Shown here piece by piece: positions 3,027 through 60,545 of a DNA stretch of 64,000 bases (position 1 is its first letter; each line of letters starts with the position of its first letter). Position numbers and translations under genes: made by a program. This stretch comes from Paramoeba atlantica (taxonomy: Eukaryota; Protista; Discosea): assembly GCA_977017575.1 (NCBI GenBank), contig CDRNVI010000044.1, forward strand, positions 124,001 to 188,000. Reading direction: 5' to 3'. Below the pieces are notes generated by a model. That model had not been told where the DNA came from. It ran no database searches and worked only from the letters and a program-made list of their open reading frames with translations.

Positions 3027-3854
3027 TTCACCGGTGCCCCCTGGAGAGAATCCCAAAGTTAGGAAAAAACAGAAAAAGTTAGGAAAATGACAAAAATCAT
3101 GTGTGATCGCCGCTTAGCTACAAAGCTTTTTTTCGAGGAATTCGTATTTTTCATGTAACTAACGGTATTTTTAAGGGATTCAGATGAGCATACGTGCCGT
3201 TTCGGCCTCTTCGGGGTGCTGGAAGGAGAAAAAGTCATTAAAAAATAAGCAATTTTTAAATCTATTCAAAAATTTTAGTAAAAAAACGTGTAATTTTCCA
3301 CTATTTCGAAGCGTCTGGCTAAAGGGTAAAAACAGTGGCAAAGTACTTTCCCATGGGAAAGAGATCTCCCGAATGCTGCACAGATGAGCAAAATCGGATA
3401 AAAAAACTAAAATTTCCTGAGGGGGGGATCAATATGACGCGGGTTGTACATGACAAAATTTCGCCGGTTGGACGGGACGACGAGGAAACCTTAGCGCGTG
3501 GTATTTGAAAAAATATGAAATTAGTTGAAGCCTATGTTGTCGCTGAATGTGGGAAGGGCAATCGAGCTTCAAAGTCCATGCTTCGCCTCGAAAAACTCTT
3601 ATACAGATACGGAGCTCTTTACATGATGTTACCATGCTATGCTAGTAGCGGTACTAAAATCTCCTGGTTATCACCTTTTGTTGTTCATTGTGTTCATTGG
3701 TTCATGAACCATCAAGATATAAGATACTGCATCCCTTGTGATATACGAGACCGTTAGAAGAATAGCTACTCATATTAAAAAGGGCTGTGTCCAACCCAAT
3801 TCCCCTAGATTTCCAAAGCTAAGAGGTCGACATCAAAATTTATTTTTAGCGAGA

Positions 3855-3878
3855 ACATGCGAGTACGTACTCGCATGT
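3855..3878. repeat. Perfect 24-bp palindrome
   Basis: ACATGCGAGTAC|GTACTCGCATGT. Confidence 0.9.
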
Positions 3879-3982
3879 ACTCGGCAAATCGTACGTACAC
3901 TCCGTACTCGCTAAGGTATGTAAAAATCGGCTATTTTTGCCTCAAATCCTTCCGGTTTCTTCGGCTTTCCGGGCCGTTTTTC

Positions 3983-4079
3983 AGGCTCTTCGTTAAACGC
4001 GGTGGTAGTTTTCAACGCGAAGCGCGCAACATGAGTGACTTCTAAGTTGAAAACAACCACCGCGTTTAACGAAGAGCCT
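3983..4079. repeat. Inverted repeat, 34-bp arms, 29-nt loop
   Basis: Arms 3983-4016 and 4046-4079 are complementary with one mismatch. Confidence 0.9.
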
Positions 4080-4885
4080 AAACAATGTGCGAGCGCCCCC
4101 CCTGGAACCCCCCTGCAACCCCCCTGCCCCCCCCCCCCGCCCTGGACCCCCCCTGCCCCGGACCCCCCCGCCCCGGACCCCCCTGCCCTCCCCGCCCTGG
4201 ACCTCATAAAATCATACGAAAGTACTTTAAATCCAATTCGATGAAAAACTCATCGAACTGAAGACATAGCCTGATATTCGAACTAGTTCACTTTCTTTGA
4301 TAATATCATTTACCTTCTTTTTTTGCCATTAGGTGACATAATCGCTGTGACACCTGGACTTCCCCCCTAGCCCCCCTGCCCCCCCCTGCCTTCCCCCGCC
4401 CCCGTCCCCCCTGGACCCCCATTCTCATTTTGTTTCAATTTTGGACCACCGGAGCCCCCTTTTATTTTTTTTTCCTTTATTATACTATTGTGTTCCTCTT
4501 TATACACTTCCTCTGTATGTTCACTGTTTTTCAATAATCGAGGGTAGAGCGGTAGTTATACAACCACCGCAACTACAGTGTAAATTTATCGCCACGCATG
4601 TATTATGGTGCGACGAATACGTATAGAACACTCTAATTCGCTTGAAAATGGCGACATTTCGTCTTTTGTACAAAACAGCGACAAAAATCTAAGGAAATCC
4701 CCAGTTAGCTTAATACGGGATGTTACCCGTAAGCTTCGACTATAAGTGGACTTCCATGATTAGCTGCACCACCGTAGCTTACAATACGGGAGGGAATGAT
4801 AGGGAAAGGTCTAAGAGAGTCGTAAATTTCAAGAGTAAATTGAATGACAATTTTAACAACGTGACTTATATGAGCATTACGATTC

Positions 4886-6502
4886 ATGACTAGAAAGGAC
4901 GTGGGGCTAGAAAAAAATGGCGACTCCCAGAAACATGAATTACATTGTACTTGCGCCGAAAGAGGAAATGTGTTTTCTCAAAAACCATATTGTATCACAC
5001 TTGATTCTACGGTTATACTCAAACCGAGCATTGTGCAATCCATGATTACCTCAATTCTGAGCAAATCCCTCGTGAGTACACCGAAGTGGATATCATTTGC
5101 AGATACAACACCAAGGATCGCAGTTTTATTTGTAATTGATGAGATAGAGGAGAATGTGTCAAGAATATGTGACTTGCATCAATTCGACATGAAGCTTCCG
5201 AACAGAATTGCCAATACTCGATTTGAGCTATTCTGCGAAGAATTCTTTTGCAATGGGGTCAAACTTACAAAAATCCTTCGCAAGACGGACTTGGACATGC
5301 CCATAGAACAAATTCAAGTTTCTTCCAACGAAATTCAATTTAACGAGGCTAGGGATCTGCCTTTTCGACTATGTAGCGCAAAACATTTGCTTGCATCGGC
5401 GGAAGATATGCTCATTCTAGGGATTGACTCACATGCTGAAAATCAAAATTTTATTAAAACTCAGCCCCCCACAAGAAGCACAGTACGTAGCGCAGAAAAA
5501 TTGTTAGCCATTGATTGTGAAATGGTGCTAACTCAACATGGGCAAGAGCTCGCGAGAGTCTCGATCGTGGATTGTACAACTCGTTCAGTTGTGTATGACG
5601 AAATTGTACAGCCAGAAAACCCGGTTACAAACTATTTAACGGCTTACAGTGGAATAACAAGAAAAAAATTGCTGGGGGTAAAGACGACCATACATGACGT
5701 GCAATCTTATTTATTGGCGAATTTGATTTTCGAGGATACGATTCTTGTCGGACACAGCATCATCAATGATTTAAAGGCTCTGCGCATCCAACATTCAAGA
5801 ATTGCAGAACTTACCTTGCTTTATCCCAGAGGGTCGAATTCCGAAATAGAAGGTATAAATACGAGGCGCAGTCCGCAATACTCACTAAAAACGTTATGCA
5901 GGGTTCTACTTAATCGTACTATTCAGAATAATCCAGCGCTCGGCCACGACAGCGTGGAAGATGCCCTTGCAACGGCAGATCTTTTTTGTCTTAAATTATC
6001 GAAAGGAATTCACTTCGGGTCCAATTTAAAGCTTGAATGCTCACCTCGAAATAAAGAATTATCTATGAATGCTGTGAAGAGTCGTTTTCTGTGTCATCTA
6101 CAGGGCCAGGGCATTACGACACACTCGTACTGTAGCAACATCGTTGCGTCGTGCAGCAATAATCATTTTTTAGACGACAACGAAAAGAGTATTGATTCTC
6201 AGCCATCTTGTCTGTGTAATGTGTTTCTCCCAAAAAACATCGCAGGATTTCCCTTAGACTCATTTACAACAAGTTTTTGTACACATAAGAGCGTGAATGC
6301 CAAAAGTGATTGGGCAGCTAGCATATTGCAGAAAAAGAAGTCCTTCACCTTTGTGCACATAAATAAGATAATATCTTTGGACCAATTGACTGAGGCATTG
6401 AAATCCCTTTATCAGAATGTGCCCTCACCGGAAAAAAGGCCTTTTGTCACTGTTATAGCATTGGGAGAAAATCGGCGTACCCCCTTTGTATTTTTCGCCT
6501 AG
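4886..6502 (+). CDS. DEDDh RNA exonuclease (REX1/REXO-like)
   Basis: LAIDCEMV, ELARVS, YSGIT, LVGHSIINDLKAL, GHDSVEDALAT motifs. Confidence 0.9.
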   Translation: MTRKDVGLEKNGDSQKHELHCTCAERGNVFSQKPYCITLDSTVILKPSIVQSMITSILSKSLVSTPKWISFADTTPRIAVLFVIDEIEENVSRICDLHQFDMKLPNRIANTRFELFCEEFFCNGVKLTKILRKTDLDMPIEQIQVSSNEIQFNEARDLPFRLCSAKHLLASAEDMLILGIDSHAENQNFIKTQPPTRSTVRSAEKLLAIDCEMVLTQHGQELARVSIVDCTTRSVVYDEIVQPENPVTNYLTAYSGITRKKLLGVKTTIHDVQSYLLANLIFEDTILVGHSIINDLKALRIQHSRIAELTLLYPRGSNSEIEGINTRRSPQYSLKTLCRVLLNRTIQNNPALGHDSVEDALATADLFCLKLSKGIHFGSNLKLECSPRNKELSMNAVKSRFLCHLQGQGITTHSYCSNIVASCSNNHFLDDNEKSIDSQPSCLCNVFLPKNIAGFPLDSFTTSFCTHKSVNAKSDWAASILQKKKSFTFVHINKIISLDQLTEALKSLYQNVPSPEKRPFVTVIALGENRRTPFVFFA

Positions 6503-56948: not shown

Positions 56949-58775
56949 ATGATACTGTTTATGAAAGCTCTTAAAAATAATCATATATTAAAATTACGCG
57001 TAAAGACACATTGTGTAACTATGGATTCTTTTTCTTTTGACAAAGAGGCACTCATCTTCTGTATTTTACTCTTGATGTTCAAATATTGTTTCATACACGG
57101 ACGCATCCGCTCCACCGATCGCCTCCACGACCCCGAGGGTACCGGTCGACTGCGTTGTCTCCCCGAACACCACTGTTACCGCGAGGAGACACCTGCGGAG
57201 CCAGAAGAGCTAAAATCCGAAACCACTAACACCACCACCCATACTCAACCTTCCCCACCCAATCTCCTCGACACCATTCTGTGCTCCGCCCACCACATAC
57301 CACGACCCGTTCACGACCTCCAGCTCCAATCCACACCCTACGGCTCTGTCTACACCTGCACCCTTGACAACCCTTGTGCCATTTCTTCCGGTATTTCCCC
57401 TCCCCTCCCCACCACATCTATTGAACGTTCCCCGATCTGTGCGCCCAACCCCCCATCAACTCCTTCCTCACCCCGTACATCCAGCGCTACCCACAAGCAC
57501 CCAGAGCACCCCGACTTTGAACCCCGACGAAACCCATCCCTCTCCTCTCCACAATGTTACACGAACCCATCTACACGATCCATACCCCGACCCAACGATT
57601 CGCACAGGGACCCCCTTCCTTCCCGACACTCCCCGCGTTTCTCCCCGTCCCATCCCTTCCCTTCGGATAACAGAACAGGAAGAGGAAGAAGCGGAAGAAG
57701 CGGAAGAAGCGGAAATCGAAGTCCAAGTAGGGAAACAAGAGGAAGAACCCTCTCTCCCTTCCACCCCCCTACTTCTCACCCTCCTTCTGTGTACTTCACC
57801 ATTGTCCAAGCCCGTGACAGATCCGGTAGTAGGGGAGGCAGGGATCTTCTCATACGGGACTGTGACCGGGTACGGTGTGCGTTCCACGGGAGGGAGCGAC
57901 CGCTACACGTGATGGAGTTCGTGAACCACCGATGGAGGTGTGCGCCCGGGGAGGCGTGTGGGGGTCCTTTGGGGGAGGAGGAGGAAGAGAGAGAGGGGAG
58001 GGGGAGAGGGAGAGGAGGGGGAAGAGGGAGAGGGGGAAGAAGCCCCCCTCGAGGGTGGAGGTTGTCTTCCCCTCCAAGGGGGGAGAGAAGCCCACCCCGA
58101 GGATGGGGTCCGCCTTCACCTCCAAGGGGGGAGAGAAGCCCACCTCGAGGATGGAGACCGCCTTCACCTCCAAGGGAGGAGAGAAGCCCACCGCGAAGAA
58201 GCCCACCACAAGGATGGGGGCCGCCTTCACCTCCAAGGGGGGAGAGAAGCCCACCTCGAGGATGGGGCTTGTGCTCACCCCGACGGGCGGGAAGGGATTT
58301 CCGTAGTCCCCGGAGAAGGCAAAGTGTTGACTCGCGTGTTCCTCGGGAACGACAGTGTCCTCCGTGGGAGGATCAGGAGGAGAGGGGAAGGGGATGGGAA
58401 AGACGAGAGGGAAGGAGTCCACCTCGTGGATGGGGGTGGCCTTCACCTCCAAGGGGGAGGGGGGATTCCCGTAGTCCCAAGAGACAGGATAGTGTCGACT
58501 CTTATAGCCATAGGGAAAGACCTTGTCCGCCATGGGAGGATCGGGAGGAGACGAGGGGGAGGAGGAGAAGCCGACCTCGAGGATGGGGGTTATCACCTCC
58601 AAGGGGGGAGTGGAGGGGGGAGAGAGATTCCCGAAGCCCCTGGAGAAAGGGTGGTGCCCACGCGCGTGGTCGCGGGAAACGACATCACGCGGAGAGTCGA
58701 CAGGCCCGCGGAGGGAAAAGGGGAAATGGAGGTGGAAGGGGGAGAGGGAGGGGAAGAGGACTTTCTGAGGACTAG
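56949..58775 (+). CDS. Protein with two C-x2-H-x17/19-C-x5-C fingers and SPPR/RS-rich repeats
   Basis: Fingers at 57087-57176 and 57876-57959, and 16-aa RSPPRGWxxxSPPRGE repeats. The true start may be the ATG at 57075. Confidence 0.7.
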   Translation: MILFMKALKNNHILKLRVKTHCVTMDSFSFDKEALIFCILLLMFKYCFIHGRIRSTDRLHDPEGTGRLRCLPEHHCYREETPAEPEELKSETTNTTTHTQPSPPNLLDTILCSAHHIPRPVHDLQLQSTPYGSVYTCTLDNPCAISSGISPPLPTTSIERSPICAPNPPSTPSSPRTSSATHKHPEHPDFEPRRNPSLSSPQCYTNPSTRSIPRPNDSHRDPLPSRHSPRFSPSHPFPSDNRTGRGRSGRSGRSGNRSPSRETRGRTLSPFHPPTSHPPSVYFTIVQARDRSGSRGGRDLLIRDCDRVRCAFHGRERPLHVMEFVNHRWRCAPGEACGGPLGEEEEEREGRGRGRGGGRGRGGRSPPRGWRLSSPPRGERSPPRGWGPPSPPRGERSPPRGWRPPSPPREERSPPRRSPPQGWGPPSPPRGERSPPRGWGLCSPRRAGRDFRSPRRRQSVDSRVPRERQCPPWEDQEERGRGWERREGRSPPRGWGWPSPPRGRGDSRSPKRQDSVDSYSHRERPCPPWEDREETRGRRRSRPRGWGLSPPRGEWRGERDSRSPWRKGGAHARGRGKRHHAESRQARGGKRGNGGGRGRGRGRGLSED

Positions 58776-58989
58776 ATTTCACGGTCGATGTAAAGGGGTC
58801 TCGGAGGAAGGCCCCCCGGATAACGCTGTGCCATTGGATAGGAGGACTGGAGATAGGAGATCAGGGCTTCACCGTTTTTCTCACACGAGATTCTCAAGTA
58901 TGATATTTTTCATATTTAGCTACCATGTATGTATGTCACTCGCACTGTTGTGTTTTCTCACTGTTTCGCCAATATGTAGTCGCAGTCTA

Positions 58990-60228
58990 CATACATACAT
59001 ACATACATAAACATTGGCAGATAATACATTATTGTCTACCAATTGGTAAACTCTCTATTCTCCCCAAAAAGTCACTATACTTTCACTTAAACTCAAGGAC
59101 CCTTTCACAATTATTCTTCTGCGACTTACGATTTTGTCGCTCTACGTCTTGCAAAATTCTTCTTTTCCTGCGAATCCGTCGATCTCGATTTTTTCTGATT
59201 TAGGGATTCTACCGCAATAGAATGCGCCTCGTCGATCAGCTTTGTTTTCCGTTTCCGGGATAAGCAAGTTCTTTCTGGAATGGTGCAATTCGGTTGTTCC
59301 ATCATAATCTTTAGGCCCCTGATCCATGAATATTCAGAAAATAGCACTATTTTCCCCTGAGTATTCGGTTTAATTCTCTTGACACGTGGCTCATTTTCAG
59401 TATGTTTTCTTGATAAAGAGTCCGCTTCAGAATTCCACTTATTACCGCAGTGTGCTCGAACCTTAATAATATTGATTGTAATTCCATTGTTTTTCAATGA
59501 TCGTAAGCAAGAGTCAAGAAATTGCAGCAGATCTGAGTTTGACCCATCGTACCCAACAAGTCTCTCCCTTTTTTGACGAATGTGCACAAAATCCCACACG
59601 TAGTAGGAGTCCGTGTGTATGCTGACATGTTTAGAGGTATTTATATGACTGAGGCCAACAAGAATAGCATGCACTTCAGCTCGCTCCGGTGAGTTTGTCT
59701 CTGCGGCCGATAGCATACATGTATATGATTCATTGTGACTTCCTTGTAAAGTAACGCATCCGACGGCTGGACTCCTCGAAGCAATACTCCGATCCGGAAT
59801 CGATGCATCGACATATACATGCAACTCCTCAGGCCTAATTGGAAAGAGTTTTTCACCTTCTTCCACAAATTGAAGCTTACTGGAATCTGGGTCTTTACAT
59901 AGTCTAGCTTGTGTCGTTTTCCATTTTGGGTTCTTGACCCCCACCAGGGATACACTAGGTTCTAAGGACTCTTGAAAATTTTCAAATTTGCTGTAATTTC
60001 CGCCAATGCTCCCTGTCAAAAGCGTAAGCAAACATTTCTTCCATCTCTATACCAAGGTCTTGAGCGCACGCTTCGGCAGGAGACGGGCGCCTAGCTTTTG
60101 AACGAAAGTTCCATTTGATGAGCTCCACGTAAATAGAAGAGTGTCGAATTTGATGTCCAACCAGGCGGGCACGACTTACGCGATGTATGGTTTCGAAAAG
60201 TGGTGTCTTATTGTACAAGGATTGTACA
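58990..60228 (-). mobile_element. 5'-truncated RTE-like non-LTR retrotransposon with RNase H
   Basis: 12-bp TSD AGTCGCAGTCTA at 58978-58989 and 60229-60240, and a (CATA)5 tail at 58990-59009 on +. The minus strand has an RTE-type post-RT segment (ARLVGHQIR...RRP...DL...DREHWR) followed by RNase H. Confidence 0.88.
59126..60031 (-). CDS. Retroelement RNase HI domain
   Basis: VYVDAS, RAEVHAILVGL, IHTDS, KVRAHCG, NSEADSLS: the D-E-D-H-D set is complete. Confidence 0.88.
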   Translation of the reverse strand: MLTLLTGSIGGNYSKFENFQESLEPSVSLVGVKNPKWKTTQARLCKDPDSSKLQFVEEGEKLFPIRPEELHVYVDASIPDRSIASRSPAVGCVTLQGSHNESYTCMLSAAETNSPERAEVHAILVGLSHINTSKHVSIHTDSYYVWDFVHIRQKRERLVGYDGSNSDLLQFLDSCLRSLKNNGITINIIKVRAHCGNKWNSEADSLSRKHTENEPRVKRIKPNTQGKIVLFSEYSWIRGLKIMMEQPNCTIPERTCLSRKRKTKLIDEAHSIAVESLNQKKSRSTDSQEKKNFARRRATKS

Positions 60229-60545
60229 AGTCGCAGTCTATCAGATAGACAACACCTGTGCTCTGTTCTTTCTTGTCTTTAGTAAGTTATTGAAGGCATT
60301 AAAATGCTTATGAAAGTGCATCAGCAATCGCATGAAGCAAAAACAGAAATAATTTGCTCGGTTTGCACGGGAAATTTGCATGTAAGTTTAAGATTGACGA
60401 AACGTTGTCTCAGACTTGTCAAGCAATATTTAGAGTTCTTATTGGTTGAATAATTGGAGTTTGAAAGAATCTGTATTTGGTCACGCCTTAAGAGAAGAAT
60501 TTAAGAAATGTAGCTATTTCCTTTTACTTTACCGAACTCTTTGCC

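Follow-up and report, generated by a model that had tools for sequence, protein, structure and literature searches.

A stretch of 64,000 nucleotides from contig CDRNVI010000044.1 of the Paramoeba atlantica assembly GCA_977017575.1 (positions 124,001 to 188,000 of the forward strand), called the window hereafter, was analysed. On its minus strand, a 1239-bp insert lies at positions 58990-60228 between exact copies of a 12-bp target-site duplication (TSD), at 58978-58989 and 60229-60240. The insert is the 3' part of a long interspersed nuclear element (LINE) and carries the end of the reverse transcriptase (RT) region, the tail that follows the RT, and an RNase H domain. It is an ordinary dead LINE fragment, documented by the TSD and by an empty site elsewhere in the assembly. 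In our judgement it was probably dead on arrival, the product of target-primed reverse transcription of a LINE whose family is young, low in copy number and part of an RTE-like lineage with an added RNase H. The features of the insertion, in the direction of the element, are as follows.

60229-60240, minus strand: 5' copy of the TSD, TAGACTGCGACT; exact repeat, present as a single copy at C66:200524-200535
60224-60228, minus strand: extra bases TGTAC at the 5' junction, which with their neighbours form a 10/11-bp duplication at 60210-60230
58990-60228, minus strand: 5'-truncated LINE insert of 1239 bp, with 98-99% identity to the copies on contigs C6, C20 and C30, and missing at the C66 site
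59993-60223, minus strand: end of the RT thumb and post-RT tail, GH..R...RRP...DL...DR..WR, from tblastn against the intact protein (~residues 1018-1102) and the tail alignment
59986-59992, minus strand: 7-bp insertion AGCAAAT, private to this copy and placed to within a few bases, which shifts the frame and leads to TGA at 59982-59984
59402-59830, minus strand: RNase H domain of type 1 with D-E-D-H-D (PF00075, residues 68-210 of the frame 59126-60031)
59126-59401, minus strand: basic, K/R-rich C-terminal extension and stop codon, from the translation of the open reading frame (ORF) and the family alignment
59010-59125, minus strand: 3' untranslated region (UTR) of 116 nt, with a predicted terminal hairpin at ~59014-59042, four bases 5' of the tail
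58990-59009, minus strand: (TATG)5 microsatellite tail, the same as on the C6, C20, C30 and C3 copies
58978-58989, minus strand: 3' copy of the TSD; exact repeat, supported by the empty-site comparison

The anatomy described here is almost certainly correct. The 12-mer TAGACTGCGACT has two exact matches in the window, both on the minus strand, where none is expected by chance. Read from 60240 to 58978, the order is TAGACTGCGACT, TGTAC, 1234 element bases ending in (TATG)5, and TAGACTGCGACT again. Tandem Repeats Finder detected (TACA)5.5 at 58988-59009, which is (TATG)5 at 59009-58990 in the sense of the element, and an 11-bp duplication of 1.9 copies, ATTGTACAAGG, at 60210-60230. An initial annotation made from the sequence had described an antisense insertion of 1239 bp with a 12-bp TSD, a (TATG)5 end and an 11-bp duplication at the 5' junction, and these coordinates were confirmed by the two repeat searches. 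The insert corresponds to nt 3252-4474 of a full-length copy of 4474 nt, i.e., the last 27% of a LINE of ~4.47 kb, and the sequence that the C6, C20 and C3 copies have in common extends upstream past its 5' end, in agreement with the 5' truncation proposed earlier. At the 5' junction, the full-length copies read ..CCACTTG followed directly by AATCC.., and the window reads TSD, TGTAC and AATCC. The bases TGTAC may represent a microhomology or a template-jump junction.

The 78-codon ORF at 59982-60218, taken from a program-made ORF list, contains VGHQIRH...RRP...DLG...DREHWRKL, and the pattern GH..R...RRP...DL...DR..WR reported for the first ORF is therefore seen in its translation. The RNase HI domain reported for the second frame was also found, as a near end-to-end match to Pfam RNase_H. 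In the 301-codon frame at 59126-60031, the match covered positions 2-139 of 141 with an E value of 4.7e-13 and a score of 50 bits against a cut-off of 25.8, and the D-E-D-H-D residues were present. The Pfam match and the catalytic motifs settle the predicted RNase H fold.

The assembly was searched with the insert and 680-690 bases of flanking sequence on each side. On contig C66, the left flank aligned at 199864-200535 and the right flank at 200524-201213, each with 98% identity. These alignments have exactly 12 bp in common (200524-200535), where the target 12-mer occurs once and the insert is absent. Because of this exact overlap, C66 appears to be the unoccupied target with a single 12-mer, either as the other allele (a haplotig polymorphism) or as a recent duplicate. 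The empty site sought in the initial annotation was thus available within the assembly. Occupied and empty sites in one assembly show recent activity, and this is the main value of the window copy.

The genome search revealed copies with 98-99% identity to the insert on C6, C20 and C30, and also on C3, where the copy is rearranged. Over 4.48 kb, the copy on C6 is 98.3% identical to that on C20. In the C6 copy, a single open frame encodes 1393 aa from the first ATG, in which Pfam placed Exo_endo_phos at residues 181-378 and RVT_1 at 670-902, with the RNase H at the C-terminus. An N-terminal AP-type endonuclease (APE) is followed by the RT in one ORF with no separate ORF1, and the post-RT tail (GH..R...DR..WR) precedes the RNase H. 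The full-length APE-RT-RNase H copies expected from the fragment were recovered in this intact ORF. In the full-length copies the RNase H is linked to the RTE-type segment, and the unlinked RNase H that had been named beforehand as an observation against the proposal was thus not seen. An RNase H encoded as a separate gene was ruled out, since intact copies carry it within a single ORF.

In the window copy, the frames of the tail and of the RNase H abut at AUU-UGA, and removal of one base fuses them. These are the grounds for assigning a function to the stop codon that separates the tail from the RNase H, either through a programmed +1 or -1 frameshift or as part of a two-ORF design; the initial annotation had left the choice between a programmed frameshift at this point and a 1-nt mutation. 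In the four-way alignment, the C6, C20 and C30 copies read ..GGAAATTAC-TTGAAAATTTGCAAG.. at the site, and the window copy has seven extra bases, AGCAAAT (~59986-59992), together with a G>T change a few bases on. The intact C6 protein runs ..DREHWRKLLENLQESLEP.. straight through this point. The stop codon in the window is due to a 7-bp insertion that is private to the window copy, and this insertion arose either by an RT error at the time of integration or by a later mutation. Deletion of one A does restore the frame, as stated earlier, but the extra A is not the real lesion, and the 1-nt mutation has to be replaced by the 7-bp insertion, which is missing from C6, C20 and C30. The same absence speaks against a functional stop, as does the reading in a single frame of the C6 copy and of seven related families. 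Moreover, the 5'-truncated window copy could not encode the APE or the RT regardless. We give a functional stop practically no credence, and the programmed frameshift is abandoned in favour of the private insertion.

The C30 copy (L032) is 99% identical to the window family from the linker on, and the 113 nt upstream (L032:5699-5811) are far more diverged while still encoding a tail-like peptide. This suggests that the C30 copy is a chimera of two LINE families, produced by a template switch or by gene conversion.

The first protein search of the genome yielded 1470 candidates. A sister family was found at 59% amino acid identity and several families at ~45%, and in many of the related copies an intact frame of 1350-1535 aa aligns with the query up to and including the RNase H. 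The genome contains at least 150 PF00075 matches, many of them inside long frames of ~1000 aa or more. At least seven families are present, and seven were taken as loci for comparison. The layout was the same in all seven: APE, RT, tail, a conserved linker (LEP...KWK...LQFVEE..PFP) and an RNase H with D-E-D-H-D. PF00075 scored above the cut-off in the window copy and in every family, and the RNase H motifs YVDAS, ERAE, HTDS, H..GN and EAD were conserved across them. An N-terminal module of residues 1-154 (L029:4614-5075, minus strand), with MADASG..., RG.LF, AKLR and W-R-Y...Y.LW.G.V, was likewise common to the seven families and had no Pfam match. The last 100 residues are rich in basic residues (20-24% K+R) in all families.

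The two ends of the elements were also compared. The tails are (TATG)n, (TG)n, (TGGAT)n, (TGAG)n or (ATTAGGAT)n, depending on the family, and follow 3' UTRs of 13-190 nt. A clear short hairpin is predicted a few bases upstream of the tail in six of the seven families; the fold of the remaining one (L037) is weak. Both the hairpin and the repeat differ between the families of this genome. The 5' heads consist of tandem 17-mer arrays in both families examined, the unit being TGTTTAGACCAACTTTT in the window family and a related 17-mer in the sister family at 59% identity. Among the 5' ends viewed (L029, with the array at 5090-5250 on the minus strand, L033, L041 and L042), the array of L041 begins right at a 7-8-bp TSD and that of L029 reaches to ~20 nt before the ATG, and the array length varies between copies. 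No ribozyme was detected by Rfam at E ≤ 1 in four full-length loci, and an Rfam search of the window found nothing. At L030 (C20:565779-575031), a broken full-length copy of the window family with 5 stops lies head to head with an intact copy of the 59% sister family, and 17-mer arrays lie between the two.

Relatives outside the genome were collected by a whole-protein word search and by a profile search with an alignment from the RT to the C-terminus (A1), in which candidates were chosen by shared words. About 14 close relatives (E below 1e-200) with RVT_1 and RNase_H were obtained from ENA, JGI and Logan data. They have no informative names, one JGI entry being labelled only 'ribonuclease HI', and none was supplied by a cluster look-up; some are near-identical to families of this genome and others are 33-41% identical. 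RNase H is missing from the next tier, with E values of 1e-88 to 1e-70. When a profile of the RT and the tail was used, P0036, P0038, P0006, P0042, P0045, P0046 and P0007 matched through the tail and ended 3-14 residues later. Four of these (P0006, P0007, P0038 and P0045) are proteins of 940-1044 aa on contigs of 3.3-4.6 kb, and the other three (P0036, P0042 and P0046) are 692-825 aa long on contigs of 2.2-3.5 kb. In the members of the sister group with a whole-tail match (P0036 and P0038), the protein ends 7 residues past the tail.

An RNase H profile built from the group matched every RNase H-bearing member with 60-208 bits, and matched none of the sister-group proteins. Outside the group, it found only P0021 (34 bits), P0041 (17) and P0020 (14). 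P0041 (1605 aa, ENA) belongs to the same tail-bearing RT assemblage and has its RNase H between the APE and the RT; if real, it would be a second, differently placed RNase H among RTE-like relatives. Searches of the ESM Atlas returned generic LINE clusters only. In the PDB, the whole protein matched L1 and R2 RTs only, and the RNase H gave weak matches to bacterial RNase HI (E 0.014), in which the catalytic motifs align to the E. coli-type enzyme.

For the phylogeny, 385-390 columns of the RT core were used, with the tail excluded. A quick tree of 101 rows was followed by a careful tree of 66 rows under LG+C20+F+G4, from which very long branches and redundant near-copies were left out; supports are given as ultrafast bootstrap / SH-like approximate likelihood ratio test. 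The root was assumed to lie on L1-like rows, and the rows carry no clade names. The RNase H-bearing group was monophyletic (100/100) in the 66-row tree. It joined five RNase H-less proteins, P0005, P0036, P0037, P0038 and P0040 (98/93), then a DUF6451 pair and the P0041 group (90/90), all within a tail-bearing assemblage (96/99). The PF14529 rows, with or without RNase H, which are I/Jockey/CR1-like by domain content, formed a separate group (98/89). When the RNase H-bearing group and the PF14529 rows were forced into one clade, the likelihood was 39 log units worse (p-AU 0.0076 in the approximately unbiased (AU) test). An RT grouping with I-group LINEs, which the initial annotation had named as evidence against its proposal, was accordingly not observed with these proxies. 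Its suggestion that an RTE-like lineage gained RNase H fits the tree, in which the RT groups with RNase H-less APE-RT LINEs, several of them ending 3-14 residues past the tail.

The simplest history would be that an RNase H1-type domain was appended behind the former C-terminus of an RTE-like LINE, because the group sits among RNase H-less APE-RT LINEs of ~1000 aa, of which those with a whole-tail match end right after the tail. It could be argued instead that RNase H is ancestral to the whole tail-bearing assemblage, was lost repeatedly and was kept by this group, since LINEs often lose domains and P0041, on another branch of the assemblage, has an RNase H. However, the RNase H of P0041 lies between the APE and the RT and reaches only 17 bits with the group profile, the sister and outgroup rows with a whole tail end 3-14 residues past it, and a single gain needs fewer steps on the tree. 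An ancestral RNase H is thus quite improbable, and a gain in an RTE-like LINE is the history that we carry forward.

The known RTE elements have a single ORF of ~990 aa with Exo_endo_phos and RT and without RNase H (Tay et al. 2010, PMC2887409). They have an extremely short 3' UTR made of simple sequence repeat units, TSDs of 6-12 bp and frequent 3' fragments, and in the supplementary sequences of that study, named RTE elements carry a tail of the form ..RW.GH..., ..G.RPRGRP..W.. near the C-terminus (PMC2887409). The window family resembles RTE-1, Bov-B, Rex3, JAM1, SR2 and the lepidopteran RTEs in its single APE-RT ORF with no ORF1, in a tail of the same type (W/V-GH..R ... (G)RP ... DR..W), which in RTE stands near the C-terminus, and in a short 3' UTR that ends in simple repeats, with 5'-truncated copies consisting of the RT end and the 3' UTR between TSDs. 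On the other hand, RTE lacks the ~290 extra C-terminal residues, i.e., the RNase H and the basic extension, so that the absence of RNase H, a defining feature of RTE, does not hold for the window family. The window family also differs in its conserved N-terminal module of ~150 aa, its length (4.5 kb versus ~3.3 kb), its 17-mer array head, and an RT motif that reads ILQGDV.APYLF where RTE has GVRQGC/GVRQGD..SP.LF. The stringent RT of the eel LINE UnaL2 (L2 clade), studied by Kajikawa and Okada in 2002, reportedly recognises a 3' stem-loop together with short repeats. LINEs of this stringent type are like the window family in having a hairpin a few bases upstream of a short repeat tail, although they belong to a different clade.

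Gains and losses of RNase H have occurred repeatedly in the history of LINEs. Published accounts place the domain in the I group, plant L1, Proto1 and Dualen, a list that lacks the RTE group (PMC4640811). In plant L1 and in the oomycete Utopia elements, RNase H was likewise added to a lineage whose relatives lack it (PMC4640811). In those captures the domain is of an archaeal-like type in which R replaces H, and Utopia carries it upstream of the RT, whereas the window family keeps the H (D-E-D-H-D), matches PF00075 and not RVT_3, and has the domain after the old C-terminus.

Alternatively, the family could be a divergent kinetoplastid member of Ingi/L1Tc, which falls in the I group (Ingi, I, Nimb, Loa, R1 and Tad1; PMC4640811). 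Its RNase H would then be the ancestral one of the I group, and its RTE-like placement would be an artefact of a tree free of ingi. Elements of the ingi type are described with an APE, an RT, an RNase H, a poly(A) tail and a conserved head of 77 nt, Pr77, that acts as promoter and ribozyme (PMC12278014), and the window family has the same APE-RT-RNase H order in one long ORF. Bodo saltans is said to contain ingi, with no details given (PMC4728078). The gene layout of the window resembles a kinetoplastid polycistron. The 12-bp TSD of the window copy is of the same length as the TSD of ingi/L1Tc, and in L1Tc a C2H2 zinc-finger motif follows the RNase H. Conversely, the tails were microsatellites and not poly(A) in all families examined, and the 5' end is a 17-mer array with no evident unique head of the Pr77 type. 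No C2H2, CCHC or 2A-like NPGP motif was found after the RNase H in the seven families. The post-RT tail also occurs in RNase H-less LINEs and in named RTE elements, the RT stands apart from the LINEs with PF14529 and RNase H, used as I-group proxies, with the supports given above, and the RNase H of the I-group-like rows is barely recognised by the profile built from this group. In addition, no trypanosomatid protein appeared in word and profile searches with the RT that reached as far as plant L1, which is weak evidence since the candidates were chosen by shared words. We consider membership of Ingi/L1Tc unlikely. Besides the length of the TSD, the lineage appears to share only the domain order with ingi, and would otherwise work like an RTE-type LINE with an added RNase H.

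Several points weigh against placing the family in an RTE-like lineage. The domain order shared with ingi, the kinetoplastid-like look of the window and the report of ingi in Bodo saltans all count here as well. The tree was built with no sequence labelled RTE, RTEX, Proto2, ingi or L1Tc, the I-group proxies were recognised by their Pfam content alone, the quick tree had been seen before the group for the AU test was chosen, and support on deep branches is moderate, being 90/90 at one key node. The label 'RTE-like' would thus refer to the architecture, the tail motif and unnamed neighbours. A profile search with the APE domain found no named RTE-type endonuclease, and the weak PDB matches (E 0.014) point to no particular donor of the RNase H. 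The roles given below to the hairpin, the tail and the RNase H are ones that we infer. With these points taken into account, an RTE-like LINE that gained RNase H remains the lineage reading that we favour, with somewhat less confidence than the account of the window insert as a whole. The family looks like a moderately novel RTE-like LINE variant with a C-terminal RNase H, and not a new kind of element. For a broader proposal we would give about even chances: an undescribed and environmentally widespread branch of the RTE group, with an independent capture of an RNase H1-type domain past the ancestral C-terminus, an array head and family-specific 3' ends of hairpin and microsatellite, that is the dominant LINE of a host taken here as euglenozoan. 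In that case, at least some of the 'ingi' described from free-living kinetoplastids would in fact belong to this lineage.

The window copy may have been produced in the following way. The AP-type endonuclease of the element would have nicked the DNA at a position between genes, antisense to a series of genes that all lie on one strand, and the RT would have primed on the 3' end of the element RNA, at the hairpin followed by (TATG)n. Copying of the cDNA would have halted after 1.24 kb, and a second nick 12 bp away would account for the 12-bp duplication, with the five extra bases marking the 5' join. The RNase H presumably clears the RNA template from the cDNA hybrid and allows second-strand synthesis, and the family-specific hairpin and microsatellite probably serve as the recognition or priming site of the RT.

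If this placement is correct, RNase H would have been captured independently once more, by an RTE-like lineage that is still active and has split into families with different 3' recognition ends. Such a lineage would be convenient for studying why some LINEs need an RNase H of their own, and how an RT distinguishes the hairpin and microsatellite at its own 3' end from those of the sister families in the genome. The placement also bears on the assignment of 'ingi' in free-living kinetoplastids.

Nearly all long ORFs of the window are on the plus strand, in a layout like that of a kinetoplastid polycistron. The genes that were scanned are intronless and eukaryotic, and include a kinase, an EFL1-like GTPase, amino-acid transporters, ERCC4, a mitochondrial carrier and ATP12. 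A 373-aa ORF at 634-1755 on the plus strand, with HTH_Tnp_Tc3_2, HTH_23 and DDE_3, encodes a Tc1/mariner-type transposase. The region at 56949-58782, located shortly upstream of the insertion, is G/A-rich, contains 48- and 63-bp tandem repeats (58032-58259), and has long overlapping frames rich in R, G, E and P on both strands.

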